IMG/VR virus record: IMGVR_UViG_3300033153_015063 | Coordinates: 178,597 to 242,596 of that record | Reading direction: 5' to 3' (one strand) | DNA: 64,000 nucleotides | Part shown: positions 787 to 63,164 of the stretch, piece by piece | Layout of the letters: each line of letters opens with the position of its first letter | How positions within the stretch are numbered: position 1 is the first letter of the stretch | Position numbers and translations under genes: made by a program | Notes under the pieces: model-generated | Databases searched by the model: none | What the model was told of the DNA's origin: nothing | The model's input: only the letters and a program-made list of their open reading frames with translations

Positions 787-1380
787 TTAAAACTCCATTA
801 CGCTCGTGTACTCGACATCATCATCTTCTTTCATAAGCGAGAGTGTTCTCAGCCTGAGTGGTTCATCTGATATCTTTTTCTCCACCACTACCAGTGTGTC
901 ATTGTGCCATCCGCCATGACAGACCACCAACAACTCTTCCTTTACAAACCCCCGGCATTCCCCGAACCCGGTGGTGTTCCAACAACAGGAGATAGCAACA
1001 CCACCAAGTTTTAATTTCCTTGCAGCGGCATCCTTTACCTTACTCCAGAACGATGATTGGGTCGTTTTCATTCCGACATCCATCCCTATCCCCTTGTAGC
1101 ATTCAGAGACCTGCCTGGGGCTGTATGGAGGGTCAAAAAGAACTCCGTCCAGTATCTCGTGTGGACAGTATTTTTCGATGAATACCAATGCATCAACGTG
1201 ATAGATTGTGGGTGCTTCAGGGTTCAGGTCGTTGGTTATCTGGGCTGGAGAGTTCCATCCAGCAAACGGGTCAGCCCATCCTCTACCATCTTCAGGAACA
1301 TACATCTTCAGTATCTCTTTGATTGGTTTGATGGTGAAAGTATCCTTAGATGGCATATGCCATGTCCATTCAAACTTCAC
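787..1380 (-). CDS. putative adenine-specific DNA methyltransferase (short phage type)
   Basis: DPFAG SAM-binding motif and LFDPPY catalytic motif. Confidence 0.8.
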   Translation of the reverse strand: MKFEWTWHMPSKDTFTIKPIKEILKMYVPEDGRGWADPFAGWNSPAQITNDLNPEAPTIYHVDALVFIEKYCPHEILDGVLFDPPYSPRQVSECYKGIGMDVGMKTTQSSFWSKVKDAAARKLKLGGVAISCCWNTTGFGECRGFVKEELLVVCHGGWHNDTLVVVEKKISDEPLRLRTLSLMKEDDDVEYTSVMEF

Positions 1381-3278
1381 TTATTACCACCCATCTCACT
1401 TTTTTCTCTCATAGCATTTACTTTGTACTCTACATTTGGTTGTGACAATCCTTTACCTTTACCTTTAGTGTAGGCATCTTGCCATGTATCTGTCCAATCT
1501 ACGACAAGTGGGGCACCACAAAGAACACAAAATTCTTCCTTATGTTGGTTCCTGTTCTTATACAACCGTCCACCACAACTGGAACAATAAGTAATACCTT
1601 TATGATGAGCTGAAACAGGGAACTCACAACTTATCTTCCATTTTGGTAGTGATTTCATATCAGGAACAAGAACTTTACGGCTATCAGGACGTTCAATCAA
1701 TCTCCGTAGCAACTTTATCCAAGTATGAGAACGTTCTCCCTTTTTTATATCAATATCTATCTCTTTTCTCTTGTTAATACTTTTCTCCTCGATTTGATAC
1801 TCTATGTCAGATGTCGTTATTATCTTCAGAATCTTATCTACTATAATCTTTATTTGTCTGTATATATCAAGTAAAGGACAATGACATAAATCGAGTTTAT
1901 CCTTATTGTGTGTTTTAAGGCATTTCATGGGAAAACAATGAATATTCAGAACCCTTCTTTTGAGAGGGTCGTCACTCTCATCATAATATTTTGATTGTTG
2001 GAACAAGCAAGTATAGTCACTTATCGACTCTGGGCAGTTTATAACAGATGTATTACCAGCATCATCTATACTCAACATAATCTCCTTATCATCAAATAAC
2101 GGATAATGTTTGGGATTATTGTGTATGCCCGGATATGGACTCATCGAAGAACCGTCACTCCACGATTCAGGAGTTGTTGTCCAACCACCATCTATTCTTA
2201 TTATAACCAATCTCTGTGATGTTTCATAATGTTCATTGTCGAGTATAAACACCGATTTAATAAGGATTTTATCAAAATGACCAAAGAATCTTCTATCACC
2301 TAATAACAAGTTATCCTCTATGTCATCAATTCGTGTTTTCAACTCTCTTTTATTCTCTGGTCTGGTTAGGTGTCTCATCTCCACTTGGGTAAAGAAGGGG
2401 TTATCTTCTTGAAAAGGTGGATGGTGTTCGATATTTGGAATTGTCAACCATGTGGGCTTCAGAGGTTCCTCAAACTCGAAGTGCATTGATTTATACGGCA
2501 GTCTTGGTTCAACGTCGAGTGGTGTCATCTCATCAAGTATCTCCATGAAGTTGTTGGAGATAAAGTACTCCATTATCTCGTCCTTTTTCTCCAATGATTG
2601 TTCATCAGTATATACTTCCTCTTCCTGCTTTTCTTCTATCTCATCCTCTTCAGGTGTTGCATCTTTTCCAAATATAGTAAATATCTCTTCGTTTGATAAA
2701 TCTTCTATTTTGTACTCGTCAATATCTTTAATCAGTTTCCCGATACTATCAGCAAAATCCTTCCATCTATCCTTAAATGTCTTTCCTAGTAGTTTACGAT
2801 ATGCTTTATAATATTCCTTCAGGAAATCAGTTGGGGTAATGATATTCTTGAGACTGAATCTCTTACCGTCTTTAAATACAAAATGATATTTATGCACGTG
2901 TTTAGGGTTGGTTGGCTCGACTAGAAAAACACCTAATATAGAATATAAAACTGCTTCTACAGTTTCCCGATTCTTTACTAAATATACAAGTTCTTTAAAG
3001 TCTGTATAAATTTCACTTCCTTCATATTCAAGTATTAAATTGGTCAACTCATTTCTTTTTCTTTCGTTATAAGGTACAAGGTAGTCCTGACTATATATAT
3101 CTTTGAAAAGTTGTTTCTCCACTTCTTTCTTTGTTAAGTTACAGTCACATTTTACGCATCCATCATAATAGTCTACAGTAAGTTCGTCTAAATCACCTTC
3201 TTTCCATATATTGTCAATGTCATAATGGTCACTGGGATAATGACCACACTTACAGACGTGGCATTTCGCTATATTCAT
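1377..3278 (-). CDS. large hypothetical protein with CxxC zinc ribbons, AT-rich
   Basis: 633-aa ORF; CHVCKC at the N-terminus, CSSCG...CVLCG near the C-terminus; no family recognised. Confidence 0.7.
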   Translation of the reverse strand: MNIAKCHVCKCGHYPSDHYDIDNIWKEGDLDELTVDYYDGCVKCDCNLTKKEVEKQLFKDIYSQDYLVPYNERKRNELTNLILEYEGSEIYTDFKELVYLVKNRETVEAVLYSILGVFLVEPTNPKHVHKYHFVFKDGKRFSLKNIITPTDFLKEYYKAYRKLLGKTFKDRWKDFADSIGKLIKDIDEYKIEDLSNEEIFTIFGKDATPEEDEIEEKQEEEVYTDEQSLEKKDEIMEYFISNNFMEILDEMTPLDVEPRLPYKSMHFEFEEPLKPTWLTIPNIEHHPPFQEDNPFFTQVEMRHLTRPENKRELKTRIDDIEDNLLLGDRRFFGHFDKILIKSVFILDNEHYETSQRLVIIRIDGGWTTTPESWSDGSSMSPYPGIHNNPKHYPLFDDKEIMLSIDDAGNTSVINCPESISDYTCLFQQSKYYDESDDPLKRRVLNIHCFPMKCLKTHNKDKLDLCHCPLLDIYRQIKIIVDKILKIITTSDIEYQIEEKSINKRKEIDIDIKKGERSHTWIKLLRRLIERPDSRKVLVPDMKSLPKWKISCEFPVSAHHKGITYCSSCGGRLYKNRNQHKEEFCVLCGAPLVVDWTDTWQDAYTKGKGKGLSQPNVEYKVNAMREKSEMGGNK

Positions 3279-3281
3279 TTT

Positions 3282-3710
3282 TCACTCCTCTCCTAACACA
3301 TTTCTACTATTCCGTTCAGACCACCCAATATCTTTCAATATTTCTTCGGTAATCGGAGATAGTGATAAAGCTTTTATTTCATCCTTCGAGAAGAAAGAAG
3401 CTGCAAGTATTTCTATGCCATCGACATTTATCTTATTGGAGACGTGTTTAGCATACCACACTACGATTATTCTATGATAATATGGCTTTTTGATTATTTC
3501 ATATACCCCAATTTCCTTTACTATCTCGATTTTAATACCGGTTTCCTCTTTCAACTCCCTGACCGCTGCATCTCTCATCAGTTCGAATGGTTCTATCTTA
3601 CCACCAGGGATAGTCCACTTGTTCTTGTCATTACCCTTGGCTCTCAGACCAAGGAGTATTTTATTATCTTTTATCACCACTGAGGCACTACATACTCGTG
3701 GTCCGTTCAC
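3282..3710 (-). CDS. Nudix hydrolase (MutT-like)
   Basis: Nudix box GGKIEPFELMRDAAVRELKEETGI. Confidence 0.9.
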   Translation of the reverse strand: MNGPRVCSASVVIKDNKILLGLRAKGNDKNKWTIPGGKIEPFELMRDAAVRELKEETGIKIEIVKEIGVYEIIKKPYYHRIIVVWYAKHVSNKINVDGIEILAASFFSKDEIKALSLSPITEEILKDIGWSERNSRNVLGEE

Positions 3711-5149: not shown

Positions 5150-5433
5150 TATCCCCTCTTTGGATTGTGTTCAAGGTTCCAATCGTCTGTCTTGACCTTC
5201 GTGATTGGTGGAATCGGATTCGTGGTTGGTATCGGTTGGTGTGGTATCTTTGCCACTATAAAGGAATTGGATGTCTGGTAGAACTTGACATCCCCTTCAT
5301 AAGTATCTGCTTCATGGATAGCTCTGGCTGCAGCAGAGAGTGGACCGACGATGTAAGCCACTCTTTCGACAATCTCTCGGTTTACTTCCTCAAACATACC
5401 TTCACCTTCTTTACATATTTGTTGTAGTCTCAT
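5143..5433 (-). CDS. hypothetical protein
   Basis: Operon context only. Confidence 0.45.
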   Translation of the reverse strand: MRLQQICKEGEGMFEEVNREIVERVAYIVGPLSAAARAIHEADTYEGDVKFYQTSNSFIVAKIPHQPIPTTNPIPPITKVKTDDWNLEHNPKRGYC

Positions 5434-5987
5434 CAGAAATCAAGTATCGTCATCTGACCATCGCCAGGTTTCCAGAACTTCAGGATAGTATCTTCTTTCC
5501 AACCTCTTTTCATCTCCAGGACACAGGTCTGGACCCGGGACCCAGGAAAGGCATGTCGTGGTAAGTGGGATACCATCTTCAGTCCATATGACAATATTCT
5601 CTGGGTCCTTCCCTCGGAATTTATCAGAGATAACCAGGGTAGAAGGCAGATGATATGATCGGTTATATCCATGAACCTGTCAAGCATCCTGTAACCCATC
5701 TCCATAGGACTGAATGGTGGATTGGCCACTATACAGTCAAACTCTATCATGGAAGATAACTTCCAGAAGTCATTGGGTGCTGTGACATTATTGTAGTATC
5801 TCTTTATCTCATCGACCAGGTTACCCTCTCCTGGTGTTGGTTCGAGTATTGACTTGTTCCTGCACCCTCCTATCATCGAGACCATCTTCTTACATACCCA
5901 TCCCGGCGTCTGGAAGTCAGTCGGCATCGTTGTCTGAATGAAGTAATCGGTCATCGGGTCTACTTCTCCATCCATCACCATCACCAT
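5433..5987 (-). CDS. N6-adenine DNA methyltransferase (gamma class)
   Basis: ILEPTPGEG SAM motif precedes IVANPPF catalytic motif. Confidence 0.85.
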   Translation of the reverse strand: MVMVMDGEVDPMTDYFIQTTMPTDFQTPGWVCKKMVSMIGGCRNKSILEPTPGEGNLVDEIKRYYNNVTAPNDFWKLSSMIEFDCIVANPPFSPMEMGYRMLDRFMDITDHIICLLPWLSLINSEGRTQRILSYGLKMVSHLPRHAFPGSRVQTCVLEMKRGWKEDTILKFWKPGDGQMTILDF

Positions 5988-5991: not shown

Positions 5992-7638
5992 TCAGAAATC
6001 TAGTGCGTTTGAGTATTCATCGGGGTCTCTCTCCGTCCAGTCATCATCTTCTATCCGCCTTTTTGACATCTCCACGTATTCTGGGTTGATATCGAACAAC
6101 AACCAATCTTTCTTCTGACGCTTCGCAGCGATGCCAACAGTTCCCGTTCCACCAAACGGGTCCAGGACTACCCCAGGTTCGAACTCTGCCCCACAACCAC
6201 AATTGGTTTCTCCAAGGAAGATTGAGAAGGGTTTTTTTTCGTCCCACTCGATAAACCCAGTCAGAATGCAGTTCTTAAATTTCTCTTCTGGTGTTGATGT
6301 CGATAGTTTGAGTGGTTTACCGTAGACCCTTTCCATTGGTAGGCCACACTTTGTACAGACCTTTTCGGGGCATCCCGCCTTGACCGGCCTCATTGCAAGG
6401 TCCACCGGGAAGGTTGCGGTGTGAACCCCCTTGAGTGATGGCGTTGGAGGGATATCCCAGACGCATCGCATGTTTCGGCCTATCGGAGACCCACCCATGC
6501 CGTGTAACCCCCTGGAACGCCCCGTTTCACCGTCTCCAGAGACCTGTACGATTGGATTGGATGACGACCAGACATGGGACCCATCAGCCCGTAGAGTTCT
6601 CTGGTTCTCGAACATTTGTTCGAAATGATAGTTGCGACCCGCCCATAGGTTCTTTTTCAGACGGCCTGTTCCCTGACCCAGACGCCCTCTGTCCCTACAT
6701 CGTTGGCATGGATGCAATTGGGCGACCTCGAACAGGTTGCCCTTTCTCTCTTTTGGGGTTAGCTCTTCCACCCACAACAACTCTAATCCTTCCTTGGAGA
6801 TGCCATATCCCTGACAGTAGTGACACTCAACCCACACCCAGTCGGTGCCCTCTACACCATTGATGCCCTTCGGTTTCTTTGCTGTGATGCCAAGCGTTTC
6901 TCTGTTGACCCAGTAAAGTGGTTTGTTAGACCGTGAAAACATGAAGATATACTCGAAATCGTCAGTGAACCTATCTCGATGTGGATCTGGTATTGTGGAA
7001 CGTTTATACCAGATTATAGTGCTACGAAGTATCCACCCTCGATTACACATCTCGATGGCAAAGCGATGGGGGATGTTGCAGAGGCAGTTGTCGGGGAGCT
7101 CTTTCTGTCGGTTCTGATACCCATCCTTTACGTTGTATGACCTGTTGAACTCACCGTCTTTATACTCCAGGTCATACTTTGGTCTCGTTGCGTAGGAGTC
7201 TGCGATATTTACCATGGCCGTCGACCAGAGCTCCATGCCCGGGACCATTCTATCAAATACTGTGCAAAGGTTGTCCACGAACATGGTAAAGGTTGGTTCC
7301 AGCCCGAGTTGGCCGTGCCACGCCCCACAGTGAACACAGATTTTCCCACCACTTTTCTCTCGGTTCACGGATTCAATGGTCTTGGCTGTAGCTCTCGGAG
7401 CTCCGTGTAAGGTGGAACCACTCAAAGTGTATCTGTTGGACTGGTGAATCTCCAACTCTTCTCCCCACTCATGGTCACAATCGGGGTCTCCGCCCCAGAC
7501 CTGCGAAGGTCCATCATAGTCTCGTTTGTTCCAGTAAGGTGGGCTTGTAAAGATGGTTGCTATTGATCTGGATTCGAGACCATCGGCCAGATCAATAGCA
7601 TTCCCTTCAATAACCTGGTTCCTATCTATCTTCTGCAT
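5992..7638 (-). CDS. DNA methyltransferase (N4-C/N6-A, beta class) with zinc-binding insertions
   Basis: TSPPY, HTATFP and VLDPFGGTGT motifs; inserted CHYCQGYG...CQRC and CTKCG...CGCG segments. Confidence 0.9.
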   Translation of the reverse strand: MQKIDRNQVIEGNAIDLADGLESRSIATIFTSPPYWNKRDYDGPSQVWGGDPDCDHEWGEELEIHQSNRYTLSGSTLHGAPRATAKTIESVNREKSGGKICVHCGAWHGQLGLEPTFTMFVDNLCTVFDRMVPGMELWSTAMVNIADSYATRPKYDLEYKDGEFNRSYNVKDGYQNRQKELPDNCLCNIPHRFAIEMCNRGWILRSTIIWYKRSTIPDPHRDRFTDDFEYIFMFSRSNKPLYWVNRETLGITAKKPKGINGVEGTDWVWVECHYCQGYGISKEGLELLWVEELTPKERKGNLFEVAQLHPCQRCRDRGRLGQGTGRLKKNLWAGRNYHFEQMFENQRTLRADGSHVWSSSNPIVQVSGDGETGRSRGLHGMGGSPIGRNMRCVWDIPPTPSLKGVHTATFPVDLAMRPVKAGCPEKVCTKCGLPMERVYGKPLKLSTSTPEEKFKNCILTGFIEWDEKKPFSIFLGETNCGCGAEFEPGVVLDPFGGTGTVGIAAKRQKKDWLLFDINPEYVEMSKRRIEDDDWTERDPDEYSNALDF

Positions 7639-10534: not shown

Positions 10535-11878
10535 TTAGAAATCAAAAACCCCCCCCGTCATACTGGGTTTACCATTCTTATTATCTGTAGAAACCCTTTT
10601 TTGTATCTCTTCAATCCTATCATCACTACTCTGTATTGAGAAATCATCTATCTCACCATACAGGTAGACACACTCAGTGTCTGTCAAGTCAGCGTAGTAT
10701 TTTAACAGTCTAACCATCTCGATGTCACCACGACAACATCTTACGAACAAGTTACCTGTATGCCGTAGGAACTCACGCCTATTTACCCTTGTCAAGCCCA
10801 CCTTTGTCAGCTTCCCTCGTATCCCACTCAACATCTTTGCTTCTTTCTCGTTGTATGGGAACCTGGTTTTCCACGTCCCGGGGTGTTTGATGTTCACGTG
10901 ACCTTTGATGGGATAGGGAGGTGTGACCGCAGTCAGAATTTTTTTTACCCACTTCCATGGCCGATAGTTGGTGTGCCTGACCTGTGAGAGTATGACATCG
11001 GCCATGGCAATTATTTCTGCCATATCATACCGTGCAAAACCATCGAAGCCATCTGTAATAGTCTCCAGTAAGAATAAGGTTAAAAGACCTGGGTCCTCCC
11101 GGTTCTCTACTGGCTTACCATAGATGATACCAGAGGTGACGGCAAATATGTCTGGGAAATAATCCTGACTGTCGATTTTCCCTTCTATTCCATTATGAAA
11201 AAGGTAGAGGGCATTGATGGCCGACCTGTAGTTTCCTCCCTTCTTCGATATCTCAATAAGCTTCTCATCTGATATTTTTACCTTCTCGGCCTTTACAATT
11301 TTCTTCAGATATGCTTTAATAGAACGATGGTCGGGTGCCCTCATCTTGAAAAATAGTGATTTATCTTTAACACTATCAGGTATCTTCTTGGCATCATTGC
11401 CCGTGATAACGATTGGATGTACTGTATCTTTGACAACACGTTCCAATATTTTCTTTGATTTTACCTTCAGATTATCTGCTTCGTCTATGATGATTACCTT
11501 AAGGTCGGTATCATCTATCGGTTCGTTTATTACAGCCATGTACAACTGTTTCATCTCTTTTTCTCGCCCATATTTACTTATATCGAACTCGATTGTTTTG
11601 ATACCATAGGTCTGCCCAAGAGTATGTGCAAATGTAGTTTTCCCGATGCCGTTCCTTCCAGTTAACACCACCGCCTTTTCCTTCGGAATACCCCGGAACC
11701 ATCTATCCATGAAATTGGCCAGGGCATCTTTGATATTTTTATATCCTTGAACATCCATCAGGTTCTTTGGTCGATACTTTTCATCCCAATTATCAGGGTC
11801 CGGTTCTGGTTCTGGCTTGGTCTCTACGGTGATGAAAAAATCGTCATCATCGTCTTCCGGCGTCACTATAGGATTCAT
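10535..11878 (-). CDS. rfcL: replication factor C large subunit
   Basis: WDEKYRPKNLMDV, Walker A GRNGIGKT, Walker B IIIDEADNL, C-terminal VFDF tail. Confidence 0.85.
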   Translation of the reverse strand: MNPIVTPEDDDDDFFITVETKPEPEPDPDNWDEKYRPKNLMDVQGYKNIKDALANFMDRWFRGIPKEKAVVLTGRNGIGKTTFAHTLGQTYGIKTIEFDISKYGREKEMKQLYMAVINEPIDDTDLKVIIIDEADNLKVKSKKILERVVKDTVHPIVITGNDAKKIPDSVKDKSLFFKMRAPDHRSIKAYLKKIVKAEKVKISDEKLIEISKKGGNYRSAINALYLFHNGIEGKIDSQDYFPDIFAVTSGIIYGKPVENREDPGLLTLFLLETITDGFDGFARYDMAEIIAMADVILSQVRHTNYRPWKWVKKILTAVTPPYPIKGHVNIKHPGTWKTRFPYNEKEAKMLSGIRGKLTKVGLTRVNRREFLRHTGNLFVRCCRGDIEMVRLLKYYADLTDTECVYLYGEIDDFSIQSSDDRIEEIQKRVSTDNKNGKPSMTGGVFDF

Positions 11879-13012: not shown

Positions 13013-13243
13013 TCAGAAATCAAATACACTAGCTCTCTCCAATTCATGGTCATCATCACTCTCAACCTCTTCGTCAAAGGTGTCATCTTCTACCTCTTCG
13101 TGGCGACGTTCAGTAGCGTCTGTTCTGGTGCATGGTTTTCCAGCGAGACAGTTCCGATAGCAATGGTCACAGGTATGTCTTTCAATACCCATTCTCACAG
13201 TAGTATGTTCAGCCTCTGTGTTTTGACAACACTCACATTCCAT
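13013..13243 (-). CDS. small Cys-rich protein with acidic tail ending SVFDF
   Basis: CECC and CDHC; same terminal VFDF as RFC-L. Confidence 0.6.
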   Translation of the reverse strand: MECECCQNTEAEHTTVRMGIERHTCDHCYRNCLAGKPCTRTDATERRHEEVEDDTFDEEVESDDDHELERASVFDF

Positions 13244-13509: not shown

Positions 13510-14121
13510 TCAATAACCCATCACGTCTGTCTTCTCATGGTCAGATGTTACCTCAGAGAATTTTCTACCAATGCCACGTAGTATGTTATTCAGTGGGGTC
13601 TCGATAACAACAATTGACATCTTTTTCCAGTTCATTTCAAAACCATCAGGCCATGGTTCATCCCAATCGAGAGAAATGACGTCAGTTGATGGGAATCCTC
13701 TGGGCGTTCCAGAAACATAGAAGAATTTTGGTTTATCGCCAATCCTATACTGTTTTCCCATCCACTCATTGCTATACATAGCGGCCCTGATATGAGCTGG
13801 GATTGCAATGATTACACCATTCTTCATCCTTCCATATTCATCGAATGGTTTCTTGATGCCAACACCTTTACCAAGACGGGTATGTTCTATCTCACCGTTG
13901 ATAACCATCAACCAACGTTCTGTAACATATCCGTCCATCATTGTGATTTTATTTTCATAGAGAAGTACTCGTAAAACATATGACATTAATTCCTTGGTCT
14001 CGGTTGCTGATGATGATACAATTATATCCATACCAGTTACATCCACTTTATCAAGGACCTTACCGCCCCGGTAGTCCTGCTTCGGTTCCAGCCCTCCGAA
14101 GAAATCTTCATCATCCAACAT
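13510..14121 (-). CDS. polB: family B DNA polymerase, C-terminal (thumb) subunit
   Basis: VDVTGMD...TKELMSYVLRVLL...KPFDEYG...PAHIRAAMYSN...IGDKPKFFYV is the PolB post-KKRY region; own GGAGG RBS. Confidence 0.8.
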   Translation of the reverse strand: MLDDEDFFGGLEPKQDYRGGKVLDKVDVTGMDIIVSSSATETKELMSYVLRVLLYENKITMMDGYVTERWLMVINGEIEHTRLGKGVGIKKPFDEYGRMKNGVIIAIPAHIRAAMYSNEWMGKQYRIGDKPKFFYVSGTPRGFPSTDVISLDWDEPWPDGFEMNWKKMSIVVIETPLNNILRGIGRKFSEVTSDHEKTDVMGY

Positions 14122-14122: not shown

Positions 14123-14314
14123 TTAATCCTCCATTAATACTTTGAATTGCGGGTTTTCTTTCAGGTAATCTTTGGTATCCTGGAGCCATCCACAACTCCG
14201 GCAGGATAGGAGAGGGAAATAAACCTTCCGGTAACCTTTATTCTTTACCACTCTATTTTCTGGAAGAGCGGTTTTTTCACCACATCCAGGACACTCCACA
14301 GCTAATATTATCAT
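14123..14314 (-). CDS. 63-aa zinc-ribbon protein lying between the two PolB halves
   Basis: CPGCG...CRSCG; ATGA overlap with the upstream stop. Confidence 0.6.
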   Translation of the reverse strand: MIILAVECPGCGEKTALPENRVVKNKGYRKVYFPLLSCRSCGWLQDTKDYLKENPQFKVLMED

Positions 14315-16350
14315 TTTTTGAACACCAACCTACCACCATATTTTTTCTTTATTCCTTCACCACTTTTTTTGACCGAGAAGAATAGCCGTTTGTATATCTT
14401 CTCGAAACCAATACGGAACCGATGTTTTCCAGGGCTTATGTTCAACATCTCAGCGAACTCATCATATGTGGTGTTGAGATATTCGGCAATTTCATATCCC
14501 ATCGAAATTAATTCATCCAGTGTCATATCAGATTTGGCTGGGTCAGTCACGAACAAGCTGTCCGTGTCAGCATATAGCACATTATAACCAAGAGATTCAA
14601 TTTTCTCGGCAGAGTAATTTATGATTGATCTACCTACACTGGTAGTTGCTTCACCACAACGTACGTCCATAAGACGAAATCCGATGAAGCCCAATACTCC
14701 ATAAAATGCATTTGTAAGTGTCTTGAAAGAGAACTGCATCAACTCATATGTATTATAGAGGTCCGTACCAGGAACATTTTCATCTCTGGCATTTTTGTAG
14801 ACCTTTCGCTTCTCAATCATCTCAATAAGGATTGTAGGTATGATACCTTCCTTATCCTTACGAAACATATGGCCTGATGGTGTAGTTATATAGTCATCTG
14901 GTAATGGTTCACCATCAGATATGATAGTGGTTGGGTCGATGTCACATCCTATGATGATGTTGGGATAGAGTGAGTTCAGGTCGACCACCACCACGTTTTC
15001 ATGTAAACCAACAGGTGGTTCGAATACAGTTGCACCTTTGAATTTCTCTTCTCGTTCTTCTCCTCTGACTTGTGTTGGTAGTATCATTTTATTCCACAAT
15101 TTGTGGAAGATGTAGCTATCCAGTAGTTTTGAATTGTAAAAACATTCTTCGATGTCTGTACCTGCTGTGTTGACCACAGCCATATGATAGAACAGGACAT
15201 TCATTTTATCGTTGATTGCTTTCGTAAGTGCCACGTCTATAACATTGTATGCTGCAATGAGCTCACGGTCCCCCTCAAAATACTCCCATCCAAAACCATT
15301 TGGAAACGTCGACAACTTACCAGCTTTCAATTCACTGTTGGCGACAAAGTCGAGTTTTGAACTCTCAGGTAATCCTTTCAATAGTTTTTTCCAGCCACCC
15401 ATCGTGTCGAGGATAGGGATTCCAACGATGGGTCGCCTACCACCTCTGGCGTCGATACGACCAATTTCAGACAGCCGGGCTGGATTTACTCGCATTTCTT
15501 TCATCCGGCCCATGATTACAGGGATATCAAAACCATCAACCCACCATCCGCCGATAATATCGGTCTCCAGTTTATGTAGCATCTTCGGAATGGTCTGAAG
15601 CATACCAACCTCATCGACAGATTGAAAGTATCTGAGTGCCTGGTTATCGTGATGACCATGTGTGTTTATGATACGCACAACATCATTTTTAAGATACTCA
15701 TTCATATCTGGATTGCTTTCCAGATAATCTTTTATGTGTGCAACTACCTTATCATGGTCGATTTCGAGTTGATGGAGTAAATAGTACCTATCATGCTTCG
15801 GGGAATAAAATGAGACACAAAGGAACTCGCCTACTGGGTTTTCTCGGCTTGAGAATCCCTGTCTGTCATCAACCTCGATGTCGATGATAACGTAGTTTGG
15901 TTTGATTTCGGGCCTTTTTTCGTTTTCCCTGAGTGGAACAATCTCATCCTGGTGTATCTCATCACGATCTGGAATCCTGATAAATTCTTTGATGCCGAGA
16001 TCATAGCGACATTTGTCAGTGTAAATTACATCAGCCTGATAGGTCTTTGAGAAGAACTTACGGAGTTGACCCACGTCTCGTGGTAGTCTGGTTTCGATCT
16101 TCCAGGGATAACATCCGTCGATGGCTGGAACAGTTGAACGGGACACCTTGACGACACGTTCCAGATACTCATCAGAGAAATTGGGTTTCTCCGGTGTGTA
16201 GAAGTGGGGAGTTGTGCCCCTGACTCTGATGATACGACGCTTGTTGTCCTCATCACGTCCAAAAAGGATAAGAACCAACCCATCTTTATCCTCGGAGTAG
16301 GTAAGTGAGAATACGAAGAGTGAAATATATCGTTCCTTTGTCATCAACAA
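14311..16350 (-). CDS. polB: family B DNA polymerase, N-terminal subunit (exonuclease plus palm/fingers)
   Basis: ExoI DIEV, ExoII FDIP, ExoIII YNVID; motif A DLNSLYPNII, motif B KTLTNAFYG, motif C YADTDS; ends just after KKKYGG. Confidence 0.95.
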   Translation of the reverse strand: MLMTKERYISLFVFSLTYSEDKDGLVLILFGRDEDNKRRIIRVRGTTPHFYTPEKPNFSDEYLERVVKVSRSTVPAIDGCYPWKIETRLPRDVGQLRKFFSKTYQADVIYTDKCRYDLGIKEFIRIPDRDEIHQDEIVPLRENEKRPEIKPNYVIIDIEVDDRQGFSSRENPVGEFLCVSFYSPKHDRYYLLHQLEIDHDKVVAHIKDYLESNPDMNEYLKNDVVRIINTHGHHDNQALRYFQSVDEVGMLQTIPKMLHKLETDIIGGWWVDGFDIPVIMGRMKEMRVNPARLSEIGRIDARGGRRPIVGIPILDTMGGWKKLLKGLPESSKLDFVANSELKAGKLSTFPNGFGWEYFEGDRELIAAYNVIDVALTKAINDKMNVLFYHMAVVNTAGTDIEECFYNSKLLDSYIFHKLWNKMILPTQVRGEEREEKFKGATVFEPPVGLHENVVVVDLNSLYPNIIIGCDIDPTTIISDGEPLPDDYITTPSGHMFRKDKEGIIPTILIEMIEKRKVYKNARDENVPGTDLYNTYELMQFSFKTLTNAFYGVLGFIGFRLMDVRCGEATTSVGRSIINYSAEKIESLGYNVLYADTDSLFVTDPAKSDMTLDELISMGYEIAEYLNTTYDEFAEMLNISPGKHRFRIGFEKIYKRLFFSVKKSGEGIKKKYGGRLVFKK

Positions 16351-26616: not shown

Positions 26617-27444
26617 TCAGAAACCGAGAACAAAAGGGTCCCTCCCATCTACATTCAGACCCAAGTTTTCCATGACGTCGATGGCGTCAGTATCTATGTC
26701 GATGCCGATATAGTGCCTGTCGTTGTCTCTGGCCATTCGTAGTGATGTTCCTGATCCTGCGAAGGGGTCGAGAACCAGGTCTCCGGGGTTCGAAAAAGCA
26801 AGGATGATGTCTCTGGCCAGATCATCGGGCATCGTCGCCGAGTGTTGCAATTTAACTTTGTTACCCTCGGTGTTACTGGTGTTGTAGAACCAGACTGTGC
26901 CTCTACACTTCATGTCACCCTGGACCTTTTTCTCGATAGGGACCCGTTTACCTGATGTCAGGGTCTGGGTCCCATGCCAGGTTTCGCCAGCGTGTTTGGC
27001 CGGGACCATCAATAATTCCTTGTGGTAGACTCTTGGCTTGATGGTTCCCTTCCCGGTCTGTTTGACGAAGGCGAGGATATACTCGTGGTCGACCCGGAAA
27101 CGGTCCTGCCACCATGCCCCAGGCCTACCGTGACGGTGATATATGATGTCTGCCCATAGGGACCACCCCAGACTCTCCCAGTCATCCACCAGATATCTGG
27201 TGGTCCCCGTTACCCGACCTTCCTGATGGGAATCCCGCATGACTACCCAGGCCATACCTCGCTCTACTGTGAGGGCATAGAGATTCCTTCCTATATACCT
27301 CAAATATTCCCTTCCCACCTCCCTCTTCCTGATACCGTCGTAGGGTGGACTGGTCACTGTAAGATGGATACTTTCCTTTCCCAATTCGAGAATCTCGGAG
27401 AGCTTGATGCCACTGTCCTTGTGATAGATGATATCCTTTTTCAT
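26617..27444 (-). CDS. DNA methyltransferase (N4-C/N6-A, beta class)
   Basis: TSPPY, HSATMP and VLDPFAGSGT. Confidence 0.9.
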   Translation of the reverse strand: MKKDIIYHKDSGIKLSEILELGKESIHLTVTSPPYDGIRKREVGREYLRYIGRNLYALTVERGMAWVVMRDSHQEGRVTGTTRYLVDDWESLGWSLWADIIYHRHGRPGAWWQDRFRVDHEYILAFVKQTGKGTIKPRVYHKELLMVPAKHAGETWHGTQTLTSGKRVPIEKKVQGDMKCRGTVWFYNTSNTEGNKVKLQHSATMPDDLARDIILAFSNPGDLVLDPFAGSGTSLRMARDNDRHYIGIDIDTDAIDVMENLGLNVDGRDPFVLGF

Positions 27445-34037: not shown

Positions 34038-35051
34038 TTAGATGAAGTTTTCGAGTTCGGCCTTTGGGCACTCTGGTGAAATATATTTCATAACACCAAA
34101 CCACCCGATAAGACAACGTAGTTGAATACGTTCGGACCTTCCGTTGGTCATACGGTTGTCGATGTCGCCTATCTTAGCCATCAACCTACCGTAATCCTGA
34201 CGACTCATCTCCATAGAGTCGATGATATTGGCCATCATCTCCAGTATCTCTGAGCCAGAGTAACCATATTGATAAATCATCTCATCAATAGTTGCACAAG
34301 CTCTCTGGAATTTCCCCTCGAAAGCCTCTTTCAGACACCTCTCGACCAGTTCCTGGTCCACCCAACCAATGAGATATCTGGCTTCATCTATAGTGACCTT
34401 CCCTTCGATATAGGAGAGCTCCTGCAAGGCGTTGACAGCTATCCTGGCGTCGCCCTTTGCAGCATCAGCGATATAGTCTTTGACCTTATTTGGGAGACGC
34501 ATATCCTCACCCTTGTCGATGGTGTCAATTATTTTCAGGATGTTCGCTTTCGATAGAACTGTGAAGCGAAATATAGCACATCGTGACTGGATCGGTTCGA
34601 TGAGTTTGTTTGACCAATTACATCCAAGGATAAAACGACATGAGTCAGAATGAATTTCCATCGTTCGACGAAGGGCAGCCTGAGCATCTTTGGTCAACTC
34701 ATCTGCTTCATCGAGGAATAGAACTTTGAAGGATGAAGGTCCATAAGGCACAGTCGAGGCAAAATCCTGTATCGGCCCCCTGACAGTATCAATACCCCGA
34801 CTATCAGAAGCATTCATTTCCTTGAAGTTTTTATCAACAAACTCGTCTCCGAACAATTCATTGGCTAAAGCGATGGCCATCGTGGTTTTGCCGATACCCT
34901 GGGCCCCTGTGAATAGAAGATGAGGTAGGTTGCGATTCTTGATTAACCTTTTCAATCTGGCAATCTTATGTTCGTGACCGATAACCTCGTCCAGAGTCTC
35001 TGGGCGGTACTTCTCCAGAAAGAGTATCTGTTCGATGTCCTCGTAATCCAT
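34038..35051 (-). CDS. rfcS: replication factor C small subunit
   Basis: EKYRP, PHLLFTGAQGIGKT, EMNASDSRGID, DEADELTKDAQAALRRTME and IQSRCA. Confidence 0.95.
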   Translation of the reverse strand: MDYEDIEQILFLEKYRPETLDEVIGHEHKIARLKRLIKNRNLPHLLFTGAQGIGKTTMAIALANELFGDEFVDKNFKEMNASDSRGIDTVRGPIQDFASTVPYGPSSFKVLFLDEADELTKDAQAALRRTMEIHSDSCRFILGCNWSNKLIEPIQSRCAIFRFTVLSKANILKIIDTIDKGEDMRLPNKVKDYIADAAKGDARIAVNALQELSYIEGKVTIDEARYLIGWVDQELVERCLKEAFEGKFQRACATIDEMIYQYGYSGSEILEMMANIIDSMEMSRQDYGRLMAKIGDIDNRMTNGRSERIQLRCLIGWFGVMKYISPECPKAELENFI

Positions 35052-47970: not shown

Positions 47971-49002
47971 TCAGATGAGTTCGATGTCCTCGTCTTCTTC
48001 TTCTTTCTTCGGTTTCTTGGCTTTGGCTTTGGCTTTGGACTTGGACTTCCCACCTTTCTTTGCTGAGGAGGCTTTTGTCTTTGCCTTGTCCTTTGGTTTC
48101 ATCGGACTGACCACGTAGTGGGCGATATACATCGGTTCACCCTCTGTCTCCTCATTCGTCTTTTTTCCATCGACTTCGACCTCTTTGACCACCTTCACGT
48201 TCTTTTTCGATGAGACGAGTACTGGGTAGAGGCCGGGTGTCATGTCGAGAAAGACGTGTTCGGTGCCGAACACTTTCACGACGTTCAGGAAGTGCTCAGT
48301 CATCTTGGTCTCGATGGGCCCCACGTCGTTCCAGTACTCGGTATCGTCGGTCTTGATATTGCCGTCATACGACCCGGCCGACCTGTCTCCCATGTGACCA
48401 CACTGGATGTTGAGATTCTCCTTGGTCAGTGTCACAGGAACGTAGTTGGTGTCCTTTTTACCTCCACCAGCCCAACTGAGTCCCCTGGATACCACCTTTT
48501 TCAGAGTACTCATCGAGACCTTCGCCCGGGCTACAGCCTCGGCGTTGGAGTACTTGATGCTTCGGATGTCTGGGTACTTCTCAGAGACCTCGACCAGCCT
48601 GTATGGGAACGTTTTCATGTTGTTCAGAGCTTTGGTTGACGCCTTCCTGGGGTGAACGAACCTCTCGACCCTGTCACCATCACCATCGAAAGATTCCACG
48701 ATGATGTTCTCCTTCTCGATGGTCATCTTGACGGTCTTCTCGGACTTGACGAATCCGGCCACCTCTGTCATTTTCTTCGTCTCCCACGTGAAGCTTTCCT
48801 TACCCACAACCTCCTCGAAGAATGGTTTGAAGTAGCTGTTGATGAGAATGACCATTGAATCGGTCCCGAGGGCGAGGACATCCACTGTCGCCTCGTCCTC
48901 TTTCTCATCATCCACGTTCACAACGACGCTCTCGAAATTGCCGTCACAGTGTAGATGTGCAGCAAGTTCGGAAAAGTTCTCGGTTGTCATCTCGATGTGC
49001 AT
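47971..49002 (-). CDS. divergent PCNA-like sliding clamp with Lys-rich tail
   Basis: Beta/alpha pattern with ALGTDSMVILI...FEEVVG resembling the PCNA N-terminus; replisome context; no strict motif. Confidence 0.5.
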   Translation of the reverse strand: MHIEMTTENFSELAAHLHCDGNFESVVVNVDDEKEDEATVDVLALGTDSMVILINSYFKPFFEEVVGKESFTWETKKMTEVAGFVKSEKTVKMTIEKENIIVESFDGDGDRVERFVHPRKASTKALNNMKTFPYRLVEVSEKYPDIRSIKYSNAEAVARAKVSMSTLKKVVSRGLSWAGGGKKDTNYVPVTLTKENLNIQCGHMGDRSAGSYDGNIKTDDTEYWNDVGPIETKMTEHFLNVVKVFGTEHVFLDMTPGLYPVLVSSKKNVKVVKEVEVDGKKTNEETEGEPMYIAHYVVSPMKPKDKAKTKASSAKKGGKSKSKAKAKAKKPKKEEEDEDIELI

Positions 49003-60948: not shown

Positions 60949-60951
60949 TTT

Positions 60952-61069: not shown

Positions 61070-61675
61070 CTAGTAATCCATGTGGAGTTCCATTGCTATA
61101 ACCCTTTTTTCCACGGGCTTTCTCCCAAGACCTTTGATGTCGCCCCAGAACAACTCACTCACACCACGCCATATCTGGTAATCCTCTTTGGGGTAGTATG
61201 CATCTCGGCTGAGAGGATTATATTCTTCACGTTCGGCACCCCAGAACTCATATTCGTGGAGATTGGTCAGTGCTTTGAACTCGCTATTGGTCATTTTCTT
61301 CGGGACCCATACCCACTTGTGGACCTTCTCACAGCCCATTTTCCCCTTATCCGCTATAAACTTCATCTCTCGTTTCTCATAGGGACCAATACTCCACCTG
61401 TCTCTGAAGGCTTCAACATATTTTGCTGTATGTTTACCTTCGGTGGACGTATCATCAAAAGGGGCGACGAATACGAATACTTCATCCTCTATCGGTTCCC
61501 TGACCATCTCCCGCCCCTCAAACTCTCCCCTCGATGCCACCTTCATCCTCTCCAGGAACTCCTCCTCCGTCAACTGAGGGCTATCCCCGACCGGCCCCTT
61601 GTAAACCGTAGCTCCCTCTTCATATTCATAGCGGTATCTATTCCCTGAACCCTCAGGTATCTCTACAGTGGTCAT
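61070..61675 (-). CDS. shared-leader family member 9
   Basis: MTTVEIPEGSGNRYRYEYEEGATVYKGPVGDSPQLTEEEFLERM; ATG at 61675 lies 23 nt after TTTATATA. Confidence 0.85.
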   Translation of the reverse strand: MTTVEIPEGSGNRYRYEYEEGATVYKGPVGDSPQLTEEEFLERMKVASRGEFEGREMVREPIEDEVFVFVAPFDDTSTEGKHTAKYVEAFRDRWSIGPYEKREMKFIADKGKMGCEKVHKWVWVPKKMTNSEFKALTNLHEYEFWGAEREEYNPLSRDAYYPKEDYQIWRGVSELFWGDIKGLGRKPVEKRVIAMELHMDY

Positions 61676-61726
61676 CAAGGAATACAATGGGTGTTGAGTA
61701 TATAAAGAGTTCTAACCTCCCCTCCC

Positions 61727-61771: not shown

Positions 61772-61802
61772 AAGATGCGGGTAAGAGTTAGGTGATGCAA
61801 AC

Positions 61803-62354
61803 ATGACCGACAGTAAACAGAAACGGACCTTATATGAACCCTTCTACATCGGCCACAACATCCTCAATCCTCGTGATATCGAGGATGTAGAAGAACGTGT
61901 GAAGGCCAAATCCAGACTGAACAACGGCATCGGACGGACCGCCGGAGACCTGTGGAACGACTGGGGGTCTGATGGAATCTACGATTTCCTGGTAGATGAA
62001 ATCGGATACAGCGACAGCCGGACCGTTGGGACCGGGGCCCGGGGTGGTTCCGAGTGTCCAGGGAACACCGGGAAGTTGGCCGAGATGTTTTGGGATGAAA
62101 TCGGAGAGCGTCGTCAAAAGAAAATCGGCGATGAGATGGATCGCCTCGGTCTCATCGAACCGGATCTCCCGAAGGTAGTAGTCGAAGAGGCTACTGTGGA
62201 CAATAAACCCATCTACAAGGTCTTTCTCCACATCAGCAACCAGAAGCTTCAGCTCTCCAATCGTTTCGGTCTGGATATCTTCGCCTACCGCCGGGACGCC
62301 AGCACCACCGTCGATGAGTTCTTCAATGCGTGGTGGAAAGAGAACAAGCAGTAG
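61803..62354 (+). CDS. hypothetical protein under promoter cassette G
   Basis: AGGTGA RBS; GC-rich codon usage; isolated plus-strand gene. Confidence 0.7.
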   Translation: MTDSKQKRTLYEPFYIGHNILNPRDIEDVEERVKAKSRLNNGIGRTAGDLWNDWGSDGIYDFLVDEIGYSDSRTVGTGARGGSECPGNTGKLAEMFWDEIGERRQKKIGDEMDRLGLIEPDLPKVVVEEATVDNKPIYKVFLHISNQKLQLSNRFGLDIFAYRRDASTTVDEFFNAWWKENKQ

Positions 62355-62417
62355 GCCCAACCAACCACTACCCCAAACCCTTTATTTTATCCCTTCTCTT
62401 TTCTTTATTGTGCTAAC

Positions 62418-63164
62418 CTAGAATCTCATGGCACCTAATCGCTGTTCTGCCACTTCACAATATTCCTTGGACATGTCTATTCCGATGAACCGACGCCCAA
62501 GCCTGCTGGCGACGGCTGTGGTCGTTCCTGCCCCGTTAAAGGGGTCTAAAACAGTGTCTCCAGGCCATGAAAAGAGTTTGATGAGGCGATATACCAGTTC
62601 CTCGGGAAACATCGCTGGGTGCCCAAAATCCCGCATCTTTCTCTCCGGGGCGATGGACCACTTAGCCGTTGTCCATTGCTTGAACTCGTCGCCATCCAGG
62701 TCGCTTTCGATCCCATCTGGTCTCTTCTTTGTGTAGGTATCTTTACAGAACACTTCGATGAACTCCCAGGTGTATTTGAGATATGGGTTGCTCGGGGATT
62801 TCCAGCTCCCCCAGGCCGTGTACTTACAGTTGTAGTTGTTCTTCTCCCACAGTATCTCGCCCTTCCATAGGAATCCAAGGTCGGTAAGGTCTTTTGTGAT
62901 GATGTGATGGGTTGGTTGATAGACTTTCCAGTTGGGTTGGATGACGATACACAACCGACCACCTGGTTTCAAAACTCCCCTTATCTTTTGCCAGATACCA
63001 TACAACCACTCGAAGTACTGGTCCCAATCCTGGACATCATCGTGGGTATCGTATTCTATCCCGTAGTTGTAAGGTGGGCTGGTCACTACCAGGTCAATAG
63101 AGTTTTTACCCAGAGTAGATATCTCATCGTAGGCATCTCCACAGATGATGGAATCTTCCATCAA
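62418..63164 (-). CDS. DNA methyltransferase (N4-C/N6-A, beta class)
   Basis: VTSPPY, HPAMFP and VLDPFNGAGTT. Confidence 0.92.
   Translation of the reverse strand: MMEDSIICGDAYDEISTLGKNSIDLVVTSPPYNYGIEYDTHDDVQDWDQYFEWLYGIWQKIRGVLKPGGRLCIVIQPNWKVYQPTHHIITKDLTDLGFLWKGEILWEKNNYNCKYTAWGSWKSPSNPYLKYTWEFIEVFCKDTYTKKRPDGIESDLDGDEFKQWTTAKWSIAPERKMRDFGHPAMFPEELVYRLIKLFSWPGDTVLDPFNGAGTTTAVASRLGRRFIGIDMSKEYCEVAEQRLGAMRF

Follow-up and report, generated by a model that had tools for sequence, protein, structure and literature searches.

Archaeal RFC-L, PolB, Fen1, RNase H2, NucS and NreA bind PCNA with C-terminal PIP boxes of the form Q-x-x-[LIVM]-x-x-[FWY]-[FWYL] (PDB entries 1ISQ and 1RXM; PMC7776575, PMC4929162). 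DNA methyltransferases were not among the archaeal PIP proteins listed in the papers examined. In phages T4 and RB69, one short hydrophobic peptide that binds the virus-encoded clamp gp45 is shared by the polymerase and several unrelated viral proteins (T4 gp43 ..EKASLDFLFG, the ligase loop ..GLDFLFD, and LDFL in gp33 and gp55; PMC6212786, PMC9690074). No T4 methyltransferase is reported as a gp45 client in the papers examined. Bacterial proteins dock in a hydrophobic pocket of the β-clamp with the motifs Q-phi-x-[LM]-[FL] and Q-phi-x-[LM]-x-[FL] (PMC11139829). In eukaryotes, DNMT1 carries an N-terminal PIP and maintenance methylation is coupled to replication through PCNA, which increases the action of the enzyme on newly replicated DNA (PMC9690074, citing Iida et al. 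2002).

The stretch analyzed here (the window) comprises 64,000 nucleotides and is the last 64 kb of a complete virus record of 242,596 bp with terminal repeats and 46.6% GC. An earlier note claimed that all five complete methyltransferases in this window end in the same hydrophobic tail as RFC-L and PolB, and proposed that the tail docks them on a divergent viral clamp so that nascent DNA is protected at the fork. The relevant features are as follows.

787..1380, minus strand: DNA methyltransferase (197 aa, DPPY motif) ending ..DDDVEYTSVMEF; phrog_11619 'DNA methyltransferase' with E 4e-35, no Pfam hit.
5433..5987, minus strand: small probable N6-adenine methyltransferase (184 aa, NPPF at residue 89) ending ..GQMTILDF, a full Q-x-x-I-x-x-F PIP core that stops at the aromatic residue; only sub-threshold N6_Mtase/Eco57I Pfam hits (E about 1e-3).
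5992..7638, minus strand: PF01555 N6/N4 DNA methyltransferase (548 aa, SPPY; Pfam E 3e-25) with an acidic linker and the tail ..DPDEYSNALDF.
10535..11878, minus strand: RFC large-subunit-like clamp loader (447 aa) ending ..GGVFDF; AAA plus RFC1-5 lid, phrog_11838 clamp loader with E 3e-45; orthologue of HVTV1_87 (25% identity, E 5e-21), which ends ..SVLDF.
13013..13243, minus strand: 76-aa ORF of unknown function ending ..ASVFDF; no family hit, not independently supported as a gene.
13510..14121, minus strand: C-terminal (thumb) fragment of a split family-B DNA polymerase ending ..TDVMGY; matches the last 170 positions of the profile (phrog_262, positions 672-845 of 856) and is 29% identical to the C-terminus of HVTV-1 PolB, which ends ..QGGVLSW.
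14311..16350, minus strand: N-terminal (exonuclease plus palm) fragment of the split PolB, without a tail; Pfam DNA_pol_B with E 5e-35 and an exo domain; the best hits in a phage collection are haloarchaeal tailed viruses at 30% identity.
26617..27444, minus strand: PF01555 DNA methyltransferase (275 aa, SPPY) ending ..GRDPFVLGF; Pfam E 4e-31, the domain ends at residue 258.
34038..35051, minus strand: RFC small-subunit homologue (337 aa) without a tail (..ELENFI); Pfam Rep_fac_C, DNA_pol3_delta2 and AAA; 35-36% identity (E 2e-64) to RFC-S of haloviruses HCTV-1 and HVTV-1.
47971..49002, minus strand: highly divergent, predicted PCNA-like two-domain sliding clamp (343 aa); the core spans about residues 1-300 and is followed by a Lys-rich and then acidic C-terminal extension (..EEEDEDIELI).
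61070..61687, minus strand: 205-aa ORF of unknown function ending ..MELHMDY; no family hit; an uncertain gene, because a plus-strand ORF of similar size overlaps it.
62418..63164, minus strand: PF01555 DNA methyltransferase (248 aa, SPPY; Pfam E 3e-46) ending ..QRLGAMRF, in which the tail continues the last helix directly.
63161..63481, minus strand: 106-aa ORF of unknown function ending ..FGGLRF; no family hit.
2..559, minus strand: N-terminal part of a sixth methyltransferase (362 aa, PF01555; L010:16067-17155, Pfam E 7e-26), whose C-terminus ..GNVLEF lies 529 bases to the left of the window.

The observation made in the earlier note is confirmed. All nine C-termini it listed are present at the stated coordinates on the minus strand: SVMEF (787-1380), GQMTILDF (5433-5987), NALDF (5992-7638), GVFDF (10535-11878), SVFDF (13013-13243), DVMGY (13510-14121), FVLGF (26617-27444), GAMRF (62418-63164) and GGLRF (63161-63481). 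The five proteins are methyltransferases, although the assignment of 5433-5987 rests on sub-threshold hits and its NPPF motif.

The tail is strongly enriched, and the signal is stronger than the earlier note reported. The motif [AVILMFWC][AVILMFWC]x[FY]-COOH is found in 9 proteins of the window against 0.73 expected, in 12 against 2.24 expected in the rest of the genome (P=4e-6), which was not seen when the motif was proposed, and in 21 of 291 proteins against 2.98 expected in the whole genome (P=1e-11). It occurs in 7.2% of the called genes compared to 0.9% of 2,765 non-gene frames. The genes were called with a simple codon-score method, and a few short carriers (76, 82, 100 and 106 aa, and 61070-61687) have no independent support as genes. 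Phe is the second most common last residue (32 of 291). Among proteins ending in Phe, position -2 is D/E/G/N, position -3 is L/M/F and position -4 is V/A/L. The codons of the tail vary synonymously (GTG/GTT/GTA, TTG/CTG/CTT/CTA/CTC, GAT/GAC, TTC/TTT), so selection is on the peptide and not on a DNA motif.

Thirteen DNA methyltransferase loci were found in the genome. Eleven of the 13 carry the tail; ten match the motif given above, 11 match [LMF]x[FY]-COOH and 12 end in Phe. One complete methyltransferase (genome positions 5047-5772) has no tail and another one (26623-27498) ends ..VAEDF. The enzymes are only 25-42% identical to each other and are thus not recent paralogues. The other carriers include the RFC-L-like subunit, the PolB thumb fragment, a FEN-type 5'-3' exonuclease (PF02739/PF01367) ending ..TSVLDF, the repair protein phrog_5429 ending ..NALSF, a DUF4326 protein and several small proteins. 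RFC-S, two helicases, topoisomerase II/GyrB, RNR and thymidylate synthase, on the other hand, lack the tail. The carriers are the classical types of PCNA client (RFC-L, PolB, FEN-type nuclease) plus methyltransferases.

The ORF 47971-49002 has no Pfam or PHROG hit and only three relatives among 1.84e9 representative sequences. Its AF2 model shows a fourfold β-α-β-β-β topology (pLDDT 54, pTM 0.54). Foldseek matches the model to PCNA (E 3e-11, probability 1.00). VIA gives a Z-score of 17.4 over 227-236 residues, and the top 38 rows are all sliding clamps. By predicted fold the protein is thus a sliding clamp that resembles PCNA more than gp45 (Z 11.5), but the confidence of the model is too low for inspection of the binding pocket. 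No DnaN-type clamp was found in the virus.

The tail is conserved in the cultured haloarchaeal virus Haloarcula vallismortis tailed virus 1 (HVTV-1, Druskaviridae). In both viruses RFC-S lies next to a RecB/PD-(D/E)XK nuclease, followed by PolB, a methyltransferase and RFC-L. RFC-S is 35% (E 7e-74) and RFC-L 25% identical, and RFC-S is tail-less in both. HVTV-1 carries tails of identical type (..VLDF, ..VLEF, ..VLGF, ..VLDY, ..VLSW) on seven genes, all in its replication module, including the orthologous RFC-L and PolB and its methyltransferase (..ATDVLDF). HVTV-1 differs in having 102 kb at 58% GC, one tailed methyltransferase, an unsplit PolB and no recognized clamp.

Homologues of the methyltransferase 62418-63164 were compared with respect to their C-termini. 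The ending [LM][FL]-COOH is present in 38 of 73 bacterial and 3 of 37 archaeal copies (P=3e-6), whereas a PIP core is present in 10 of 37 archaeal and 2 of 73 bacterial copies (P=3e-4). Bacterial homologues end, for example, ..RQTRLF, ..KQMRLF, ..EQLTLF or ..KSTLF, like the β-clamp motif, and methanogen homologues carry hydrophobic-hydrophobic-x-aromatic motifs near their ends (..LLHF, ..ILTW, ..MFRW). The viral tails show the PIP core in 15 of 20 cases and the adjacent L-F in 0 of 20. In this family the tail type thus follows the type of the resident clamp, although the counts are not corrected for phylogeny and the archaeal sample is mainly from one phylum.

Compared to the archaeal PIP boxes, the viral tails occupy the same extreme C-terminal position, have the same hydrophobic-x-x-aromatic core spacing (h4-x-x-a7) and are found on the same proteins (RFC-L, PolB, flap nuclease, repair nuclease), with RFC-S tail-less. 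Cellular FEN1 of 30 Halobacteriota genomes ends Q-x-T-L-D-x-[WF], and several of these proteins stop exactly at the aromatic residue (e.g. ..QATLDSF). The full Q-x-x-h-x-x-a is found in one window methyltransferase (..QMTILDF) and in HVTV-1 PolB (..QGGVLSW). In most viral tails, however, the glutamine is absent, there is no second aromatic residue, position 5 is conserved as L/M/F, and the proposed partner is a very divergent viral ring. As in T4, a virus-encoded clamp of the trimeric type and its loader are present, one short hydrophobic peptide is shared by the polymerase and several unrelated viral proteins, many tails contain an L-D-F core, and small proteins of unknown role also carry the peptide, as gp33 and gp55 do. 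The trailing L-F of the T4 motif is absent, and the loader is RFC-S/RFC-L-like and closest to those of haloarchaeal viruses. The bacterial motifs are likewise short C-terminal linear motifs, and their hexameric form (phage-display peptide LQLELDF) shares the ..LDF end, but the viral tails usually lack the Gln.

Most likely, the tail, with the consensus x-[S/D/N]-[V/A/I]-[L/M/F]-[D/E/G/N]-[F/Y]-COOH, is a PCNA-type clamp-interaction peptide, i.e. a PIP box reduced to its core (hydrophobic residue 4, two residues, aromatic residue 7). This reading is held with moderate confidence. The virus encodes a full archaeal-style clamp system consisting of the predicted PCNA-like ring, RFC-S, RFC-L and a split PolB. 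The interpretation given in the earlier note is partly supported: two conditions on which it depended, the enrichment of the tails over chance and the clamp fold of 47971-49002, were examined and both hold. The clamp-docking reading gains independent support from the identity of the carriers, the conservation of the tail in HVTV-1, the geometry shared with the PIP core of cellular archaeal FEN1, and the way the tail type follows the clamp type in one methyltransferase family. The enrichment, the identity of the carriers, the clamp fold, the conservation in HVTV-1 and the co-variation of tail and clamp type in one methyltransferase family follow from the analysis, whereas binding of the tail to a clamp, the choice of clamp and the protective purpose are inferred. 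A single complex prediction scored 0.01 and is uninformative. Furthermore, AF2 with a 62-sequence alignment (pLDDT 84) places the tail of 62418-63164 at the end of the last helix (residues 232-246; pLDDT 87 for the tail) and not as a free peptide. In that family a hydrophobic C-terminus is widespread (67 of 119 homologues), so part of the signal could be a structural family trait.

It is possible, but less likely, that the tails bind the PCNA of the host, alone or together with the viral ring, and that the viral clamp serves another role or only some clients. HVTV-1 has the tails but no clamp detectable by Pfam or by the profile of the window's clamp, so the viral clamp need not be the partner. 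The geometry of cellular archaeal FEN1 PIPs and the motifs of the methanogen homologues are in line with this view. On the other hand, the virus bears the cost of its own clamp, RFC-S and RFC-L, and its RFC-L and PolB, which must act on whichever clamp is loaded, carry the same tail as the methyltransferases. The syntenic HVTV1_101 aligns colinearly with the clamp profile, though only weakly (hhalign E 0.022, probability 2%), so HVTV-1 may also have an unrecognized clamp.

It is unlikely that the tail is a C-terminal signal for something other than a clamp, such as a ligand for a PDZ-type or other hub, a degron that times the removal of early proteins, or a tag for a replication compartment. 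Hydrophobic-x-hydrophobic-COOH is formally a class II PDZ ligand, all carriers lie in the early DNA-metabolism part of the genome and several have no known function. However, no PDZ domain was found in the virus, the presence of the tail follows PCNA-client status rather than DNA enzymes in general, orthologous cellular proteins use that very position for PIPs (PMC7776575), and tail type tracks clamp type across domains.

Chance, common descent of paralogous methyltransferases or a structural end-piece of the PF01555 fold is very unlikely to explain the pattern: ten of the 21 strict carriers belong to one Pfam family, bacterial members of one subfamily also often end in hydrophobic residues and one tail is modelled as part of a helix, but the enrichment also holds outside the window, the methyltransferases are divergent, the tail sits on non-homologous proteins as well (RFC-L, PolB, FEN, DUF4326, phrog_11619 and NPPF-type methyltransferases), linkers of 5 to 25 residues, often acidic, separate domain and tail, and bacterial homologues have a different register (..LF) with variable linkers.

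In the favored view, each of the three pockets of a ring loaded behind the fork could hold a client. Methyltransferases would then be concentrated on, and slide along, newly made duplex DNA, which would shorten the time that unmethylated sites are exposed to restriction. DNA methylation in this virus is thus probably tethered to the replication clamp, by the same logic as for DNMT1 and PCNA. DNMT1, however, is a single C5 enzyme that copies an epigenetic pattern, whereas the virus has about a dozen N6/N4 β-class enzymes with C-terminal tails, presumably for anti-restriction.

The window corresponds to bases 178,597-242,596 of a single 242,596-bp contig, which is classed as a virus record with direct terminal repeats and an estimated completeness of 100%. 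The GC content is 46.6% and the first and last 80 or so bases are identical. A simple codon-score caller (genetic code table 11) yielded 291 genes with 88% coding. Nearly all genes from about 131 kb through the end and on to about 50 kb lie on the minus strand, and this block holds DNA replication, nucleotide metabolism and DNA modification genes. Most large ORFs between 40 and 130 kb have no Pfam or PHROG match. One 1,130-aa protein (genome 91337-94729) has 17 thrombospondin type 3 repeats plus a PKD domain, and a Ro60/TROVE protein with a vWA domain (E 4e-44) is encoded at genome 172573-174225.

An earlier note had claimed that the methyltransferases of the window end in hydrophobic-hydrophobic-x-[FY]-COOH, like RFC-L and PolB. 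This observation was confirmed and extended, since every C-terminus that it listed is present at the stated coordinates. The proteins concerned and other replication proteins of the window are as follows (window coordinates):
787-1380, methyltransferase matching a PHROG annotated as DNA methyltransferase (E 4e-35), with a DPPY motif
5433-5987, ORF with only sub-threshold N6-methylase hits plus an NPPF motif, ending ..QMTILDF
5992-7638, PF01555 methyltransferase
26617-27444, PF01555 methyltransferase
62418-63164, PF01555 methyltransferase
10535-11878, RFC-L-like AAA+ clamp-loader protein with an RFC lid
13510-14121, C-terminal (thumb) part of PolB, matching the last 170 positions of a family-B polymerase profile
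14311-16350, exonuclease and palm of PolB
34038-35051, RFC-S, without the tail
47971-49002, predicted PCNA-like sliding clamp, without the tail

The polymerase is therefore split, with a 63-aa ORF (14123-14314) between the two parts, whereas the PolB of the haloarchaeal virus HVTV-1 is unsplit.

The pattern occurs at 21 of 291 C-termini against 2.98 expected from its internal frequency (P=1e-11). As the hypothesis was formed on the window alone, the other 219 genes serve as an out-of-sample test, which gave 12 observed against 2.24 expected (P=4e-6). Only 0.9% of 2,765 non-gene frames end this way, against 7.2% of genes. Phenylalanine is the second commonest last residue. The consensus is x-[S/D/N]-[V/A/I]-[L/M/F]-[D/E/G/N]-[F/Y]-COOH, and among F-terminal proteins position -4 is V in 12, A in 5 and L in 4. 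A DNA-level motif as the cause of the shared ending was rejected because the codons for the tail vary synonymously. Thus, the constraint is on the peptide.

There are 13 methyltransferase genes in the genome. Ten of these fit the pattern of the earlier note, 11 fit [LMF]-x-[FY]-COOH and 12 end in F. One circularly permuted enzyme (genome 5047-5772) has no tail. Eleven complete or split genes score above the Pfam threshold for the beta-class N6/N4 family PF01555, with motif IV (SPPY, DPPY or SPPF) at residues 25-54 and the motif I FxGxG near the C-terminus. ORFs 787-1380 and 5433-5987 are outside PF01555. At genome 2537-5279, a PF01555 enzyme is split into an N part (4305-5279, DPPY) and a C part (2537-3520, FxGSG, tail ..NVLDF) by a GIY-YIG homing-endonuclease gene (3493-4314) that lies between them. 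The enzymes are only 25-42% identical to each other, so recent paralogy was rejected. Linkers between the Pfam domain and the tail run from 5 to about 25 residues and are often acidic.

The tail is also present on a 5'-3' exonuclease of the PolI/FEN type (..TSVLDF), a DUF4326 protein, a 'DNA repair' PHROG (..NALSF), RFC-L, the C-terminal part of PolB and several small or unannotated proteins. It is absent from RFC-S, two superfamily-2 helicases, both topoisomerase II parts, RNR, thymidylate synthase, the 5-hmdU DNA kinase (..KQRLFRPKS) and the clamp itself. This split mirrors which cellular archaeal proteins carry C-terminal PIP boxes (PMC7776575, PMC4929162). Two adjacent plus-strand genes of 251 and 82 aa (genome 96266-97021 and 97021-97269) end ..RRLFNF and ..RRLFDF, and a copy of a promoter-like element sits 70 nt upstream. 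They were considered as analogues of the clamp-dependent transcription factors T4 gp55 and gp33, but searches of Pfam, PHROGs and the ESM Atlas gave nothing usable, and this assignment is speculation that rests on the tails only. At genome 28445-30223 and 159842-161200, a TnpB-like protein (Cas12f1-like TNB domain, E 7e-8) is present, and a second, weaker candidate (E 0.012) ends ..RYLFDFY, a near-terminal version of the tail.

Aligned on the aromatic residue, the viral tail is the core of a PIP box (hydrophobic residue 4, x, x, aromatic residue 7). Fifteen of 20 viral tails fit [LIVM]-x-(non-hydrophobic)-[FWY], and the rest have Ala or Gly at position 4. The glutamine at position 1 of the canonical box is found only in 5433-5987 among the carriers, which like ..QGGVLSW of HVTV-1 PolB is a complete Q-x-x-h-x-x-a. 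The second aromatic at position 8 is absent because the chain ends at position 7. FEN1 proteins of 30 Halobacteriota genomes end Q-x-T-L-D-x-[WF]-[FL], and several of these also stop exactly at the first aromatic (..QATLDSF, ..QKTLDQW, ..QKTLDQF). The tail also recalls the T4 gp45-binding motif, ..SLDFLFG in gp43 (PMC6212786): an L-[DE]-F core is present in about 10 tails, but the L-F that follows in T4 is missing. Furthermore, it recalls the hexameric beta-clamp motif Q-phi-x-[LM]-x-[FL] (PMC11139829), whereas the adjacent [LM][FL] of the shorter beta-clamp motif Q-phi-x-[LM]-[FL] is found in 0 of 20 viral tails. All three clamp families accept peptides of this kind.

ORF 47971-49002 has no Pfam, PHROG or PDB sequence match, and profile searches of the whole genome for PCNA_N (PF00705), gp45-slide_C (PF09116) and DNA_pol3_beta (PF00712) returned no hit at E<=1. 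A word search found only the protein itself, while an exhaustive search found three relatives at 38-40% identity among 1.84 billion representative proteins. An AlphaFold2 monomer model derived from these four sequences has low confidence (pLDDT 54, pTM 0.54) and is too uncertain for its pocket to be examined. Its secondary structure, assigned with DSSP, nevertheless consists of four consecutive beta-alpha-beta-beta-beta units, as in the two domains of the DNA-clamp fold. Foldseek returned only sliding clamps, the best being PCNA3 of S. solfataricus (E 3e-11, probability 1.00). The aligner VIA, which is independent of Foldseek, gave Z 17.4 over 227-236 residues (r.m.s.d. 3.5 over 227 residues to S. 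solfataricus PCNA), and the first 38 rows are all clamps. PCNA scores 16-17, two domains of beta 13-17 and gp45 11.5. Thus, we accept the protein as a two-domain, PCNA-like clamp by predicted fold. A cognate loader is encoded in the same window (RFC-S and the RFC-L-like protein).

The C-terminal 45 residues of the clamp (47971-48105) form a Lys-rich and then strongly acidic extension ending ..EEEDEDIELI. It is conserved in kind in two of the three relatives (P0003 and P0004); the third is cut short. The extension could contact DNA or act as an auto-inhibitory pseudo-ligand. ORF 16394-17143 (249 aa), which lies next to PolB, was considered as an alternative clamp. It gave no hit of any kind and was dropped once 47971-49002 folded as a clamp.

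No close relatives of the virus were found in the collections. Searches for related loci among viral contigs gave none with either the clamp loader or the clamp alignment, and a word search with the clamp loader found two distant AAA+ proteins. The contigs L011-L014, which hold the three clamp relatives and the closest methyltransferase homologue, contain too few replication genes to test tail conservation. At L011:631-1407 and 11126-11923 (the metagenome contig carrying P0004), a DUF5131 protein ends ..KKELTLFDYL, very like the archaeal RFC-L PIP, and the ORF after the clamp ends ..VDLNHLFG.

PolB and RFC-S are most similar to those of haloarchaeal tailed viruses. RFC-S is 35-36% identical (E 2e-64) to that of HCTV-1 and HVTV-1, far better than to any bacteriophage. 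HVTV-1 shares the local gene order RFC-S, RecB-like nuclease, PolB, methyltransferase, RFC-L, and its RFC-L and PolB are orthologues of the tail-bearing proteins of the window. Exactly seven real genes of HVTV-1 have the tail and all are in this module: PolB (..QGGVLSW), RFC-L (..SQSVLDF), the methyltransferase (..ATDVLDF), an HNH protein (..DDVLDY) and three hypothetical proteins. RFC-S lacks the tail in both viruses. In HRTV-10, which belongs to a different family, only PolB ends in a PIP (..QTGLAAFC). The tail has therefore been kept on orthologues across very deep divergence, and a methyltransferase carries it in a cultured archaeal virus as well.

The replication genes and the tail type point to an archaeal host, but the structural genes gave no family hits and a promoter-like element can be read either way. 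This conserved intergenic element of about 55 nt, TTTTACGCTTTTTACGGTT-N10-12-GAAA[CG]TATATAAAG[GA]C, lies 45-77 nt upstream of start codons in most copies, in the orientation of the gene, and looks like one promoter class. It may be an archaeal BRE/TATA or a bacterial -35/-10 with a doubled upstream box. There are about 35 copies genome-wide and six hits in the window against 0.05 expected:
10438-10450, minus strand
21767-21779, minus strand
26558-26570, minus strand
41155-41167, minus strand
54318-54330, plus strand
61728-61740, plus strand
If the host is archaeal, this would be an unusually large archaeal virus at 242.6 kb, with replication genes closest to haloarchaeal tailed viruses but a GC content of 46.6%.

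Homologues of the 62418-63164 methyltransferase are abundant, at about 60% identity, and allowed an independent comparison. Of 119 from the protein collection, 67 end in [LMIV][FLWY]-COOH against 6.4 expected. In named genomes, bacterial copies end ..KSTLF, ..RQTRLF, ..KQMRLF or ..EQLTLF, which is the beta-clamp motif type, with linkers of varying length. Archaeal copies instead show ..QSRLHDFLG, ..QKKLQDFIQ, ..QKKLDHF, ..SLLHF.., ..GILTW.. and ..RMFRW... Three of these archaeal genomes were inspected and do encode PCNA. [LM][FL]-COOH occurs in 38 of 73 bacterial copies against 3 of 37 archaeal copies (Fisher P=3e-6), and the PIP core in 10 of 37 archaeal against 2 of 73 bacterial copies (P=3e-4). 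These counts are not corrected for shared ancestry and the archaeal sample is mostly one phylum. Even so, the end of an otherwise conserved enzyme changes with the resident clamp, which is what a clamp-docking peptide predicts and what a structural end-piece does not. Two homologues carry both motif types in one tail, an Anaerolineae copy (..QKALFEEPLPCEYPEARLVTWGA, L063) and a Halobacteriota copy (..QKKLFAEGFKFLSPEPEILRWRC, L128).

The interpretation of the earlier note, that the tail docks the methyltransferases on the virus's own clamp and so protects nascent DNA, is partly supported. We consider it probable, though by no means certain, that the tail is a PCNA-type clamp-docking peptide carried by the methyltransferases. 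A two-chain complex prediction of clamp residues 1-300 with the last 40 residues of methyltransferase 787-1380, the only direct probe of docking in the pocket under the interdomain connecting loop, gave an ipSAE of 0.01, which is not evidence either way.

Host PCNA remains a possible or additional partner, as HVTV-1 has tails but no recognisable clamp. The syntenic HVTV1_101 (L129:16666-17523), a hypothetical protein of 285 aa, lies three genes downstream of the orthologue of the gene that precedes the window's clamp. It aligns colinearly with the clamp profile over 214 columns, but without significance (hhalign E 0.022, probability 2%), and may be an unrecognised clamp of HVTV-1-like viruses. 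In the 62418-63164 enzyme the tail is modelled as the end of the last helix (pLDDT 87), so for this protein a free docking peptide is less obvious. A PDZ hub encoded by the virus was looked for and none was found.

In the mechanism we propose, RFC-S/RFC-L would load the viral ring at primer ends, and RFC-L and PolB would dock through their tails. Rings left on the duplex behind the fork, or free pockets on the same trimer, would recruit FEN, repair proteins and the methyltransferases, which would then scan nascent DNA in one dimension. A 5-hmdU DNA kinase (E 4e-48) and a long thymidylate-synthase-like protein (window 8581-9645 and 30594-32453) suggest post-replicative thymidine hypermodification in addition to the 13 methyltransferases. 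With 13 specificities to complete together with this probable pathway, tethering would shorten the time without protection. Only the anatomy of this system is established by the present analysis, whereas closure of the clamp into a trimeric ring, binding of the tails and the benefit to the virus are inferred.

Sliding clamps serve as tool-belts for polymerases, nucleases and ligases, and in T4 for transcription factors. Clamp-binding peptides, viral clamps and DNMT1-PCNA coupling are all known, but a methyltransferase client is established only for eukaryotic DNMT1. Literature searches for prokaryotic, phage or other viral methyltransferases as clamp clients found no report. The nearest hint is a putative adenine methyltransferase that co-purified with NucS, PCNA and RFC in P. 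abyssi (PMC4929162). What differs here is that one virus puts the same putative docking peptide on about a dozen divergent methyltransferases and that a cultured haloarchaeal virus does the same with its single methyltransferase, while cellular homologues appear to switch between beta-type and PCNA-type peptides. The analysis also adds a predicted clamp family that sequence methods miss.

If the tails bind, this gives a simple mechanism for how heavily methylating viruses protect nascent DNA quickly enough to escape restriction, and it would imply replication-coupled methylation in prokaryotes. More tentatively, clamp tethering of DNA methyltransferases may be a general, cross-domain feature of prokaryotes and their viruses and not a peculiarity of this virus, a possibility that we hold to be somewhat less likely than not. 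PF01555 methyltransferases would then carry C-terminal docking peptides that are re-tuned to whichever clamp is resident: Q-x-x-L-F for beta in bacterial copies, h-x-x-aromatic for PCNA in archaeal and archaeal-virus copies, and the short hydrophobic-hydrophobic-x-F-COOH form for the divergent ring of this virus. In this view, post-replicative methylation in bacteria and archaea would often be coupled to replication, as with DNMT1-PCNA.
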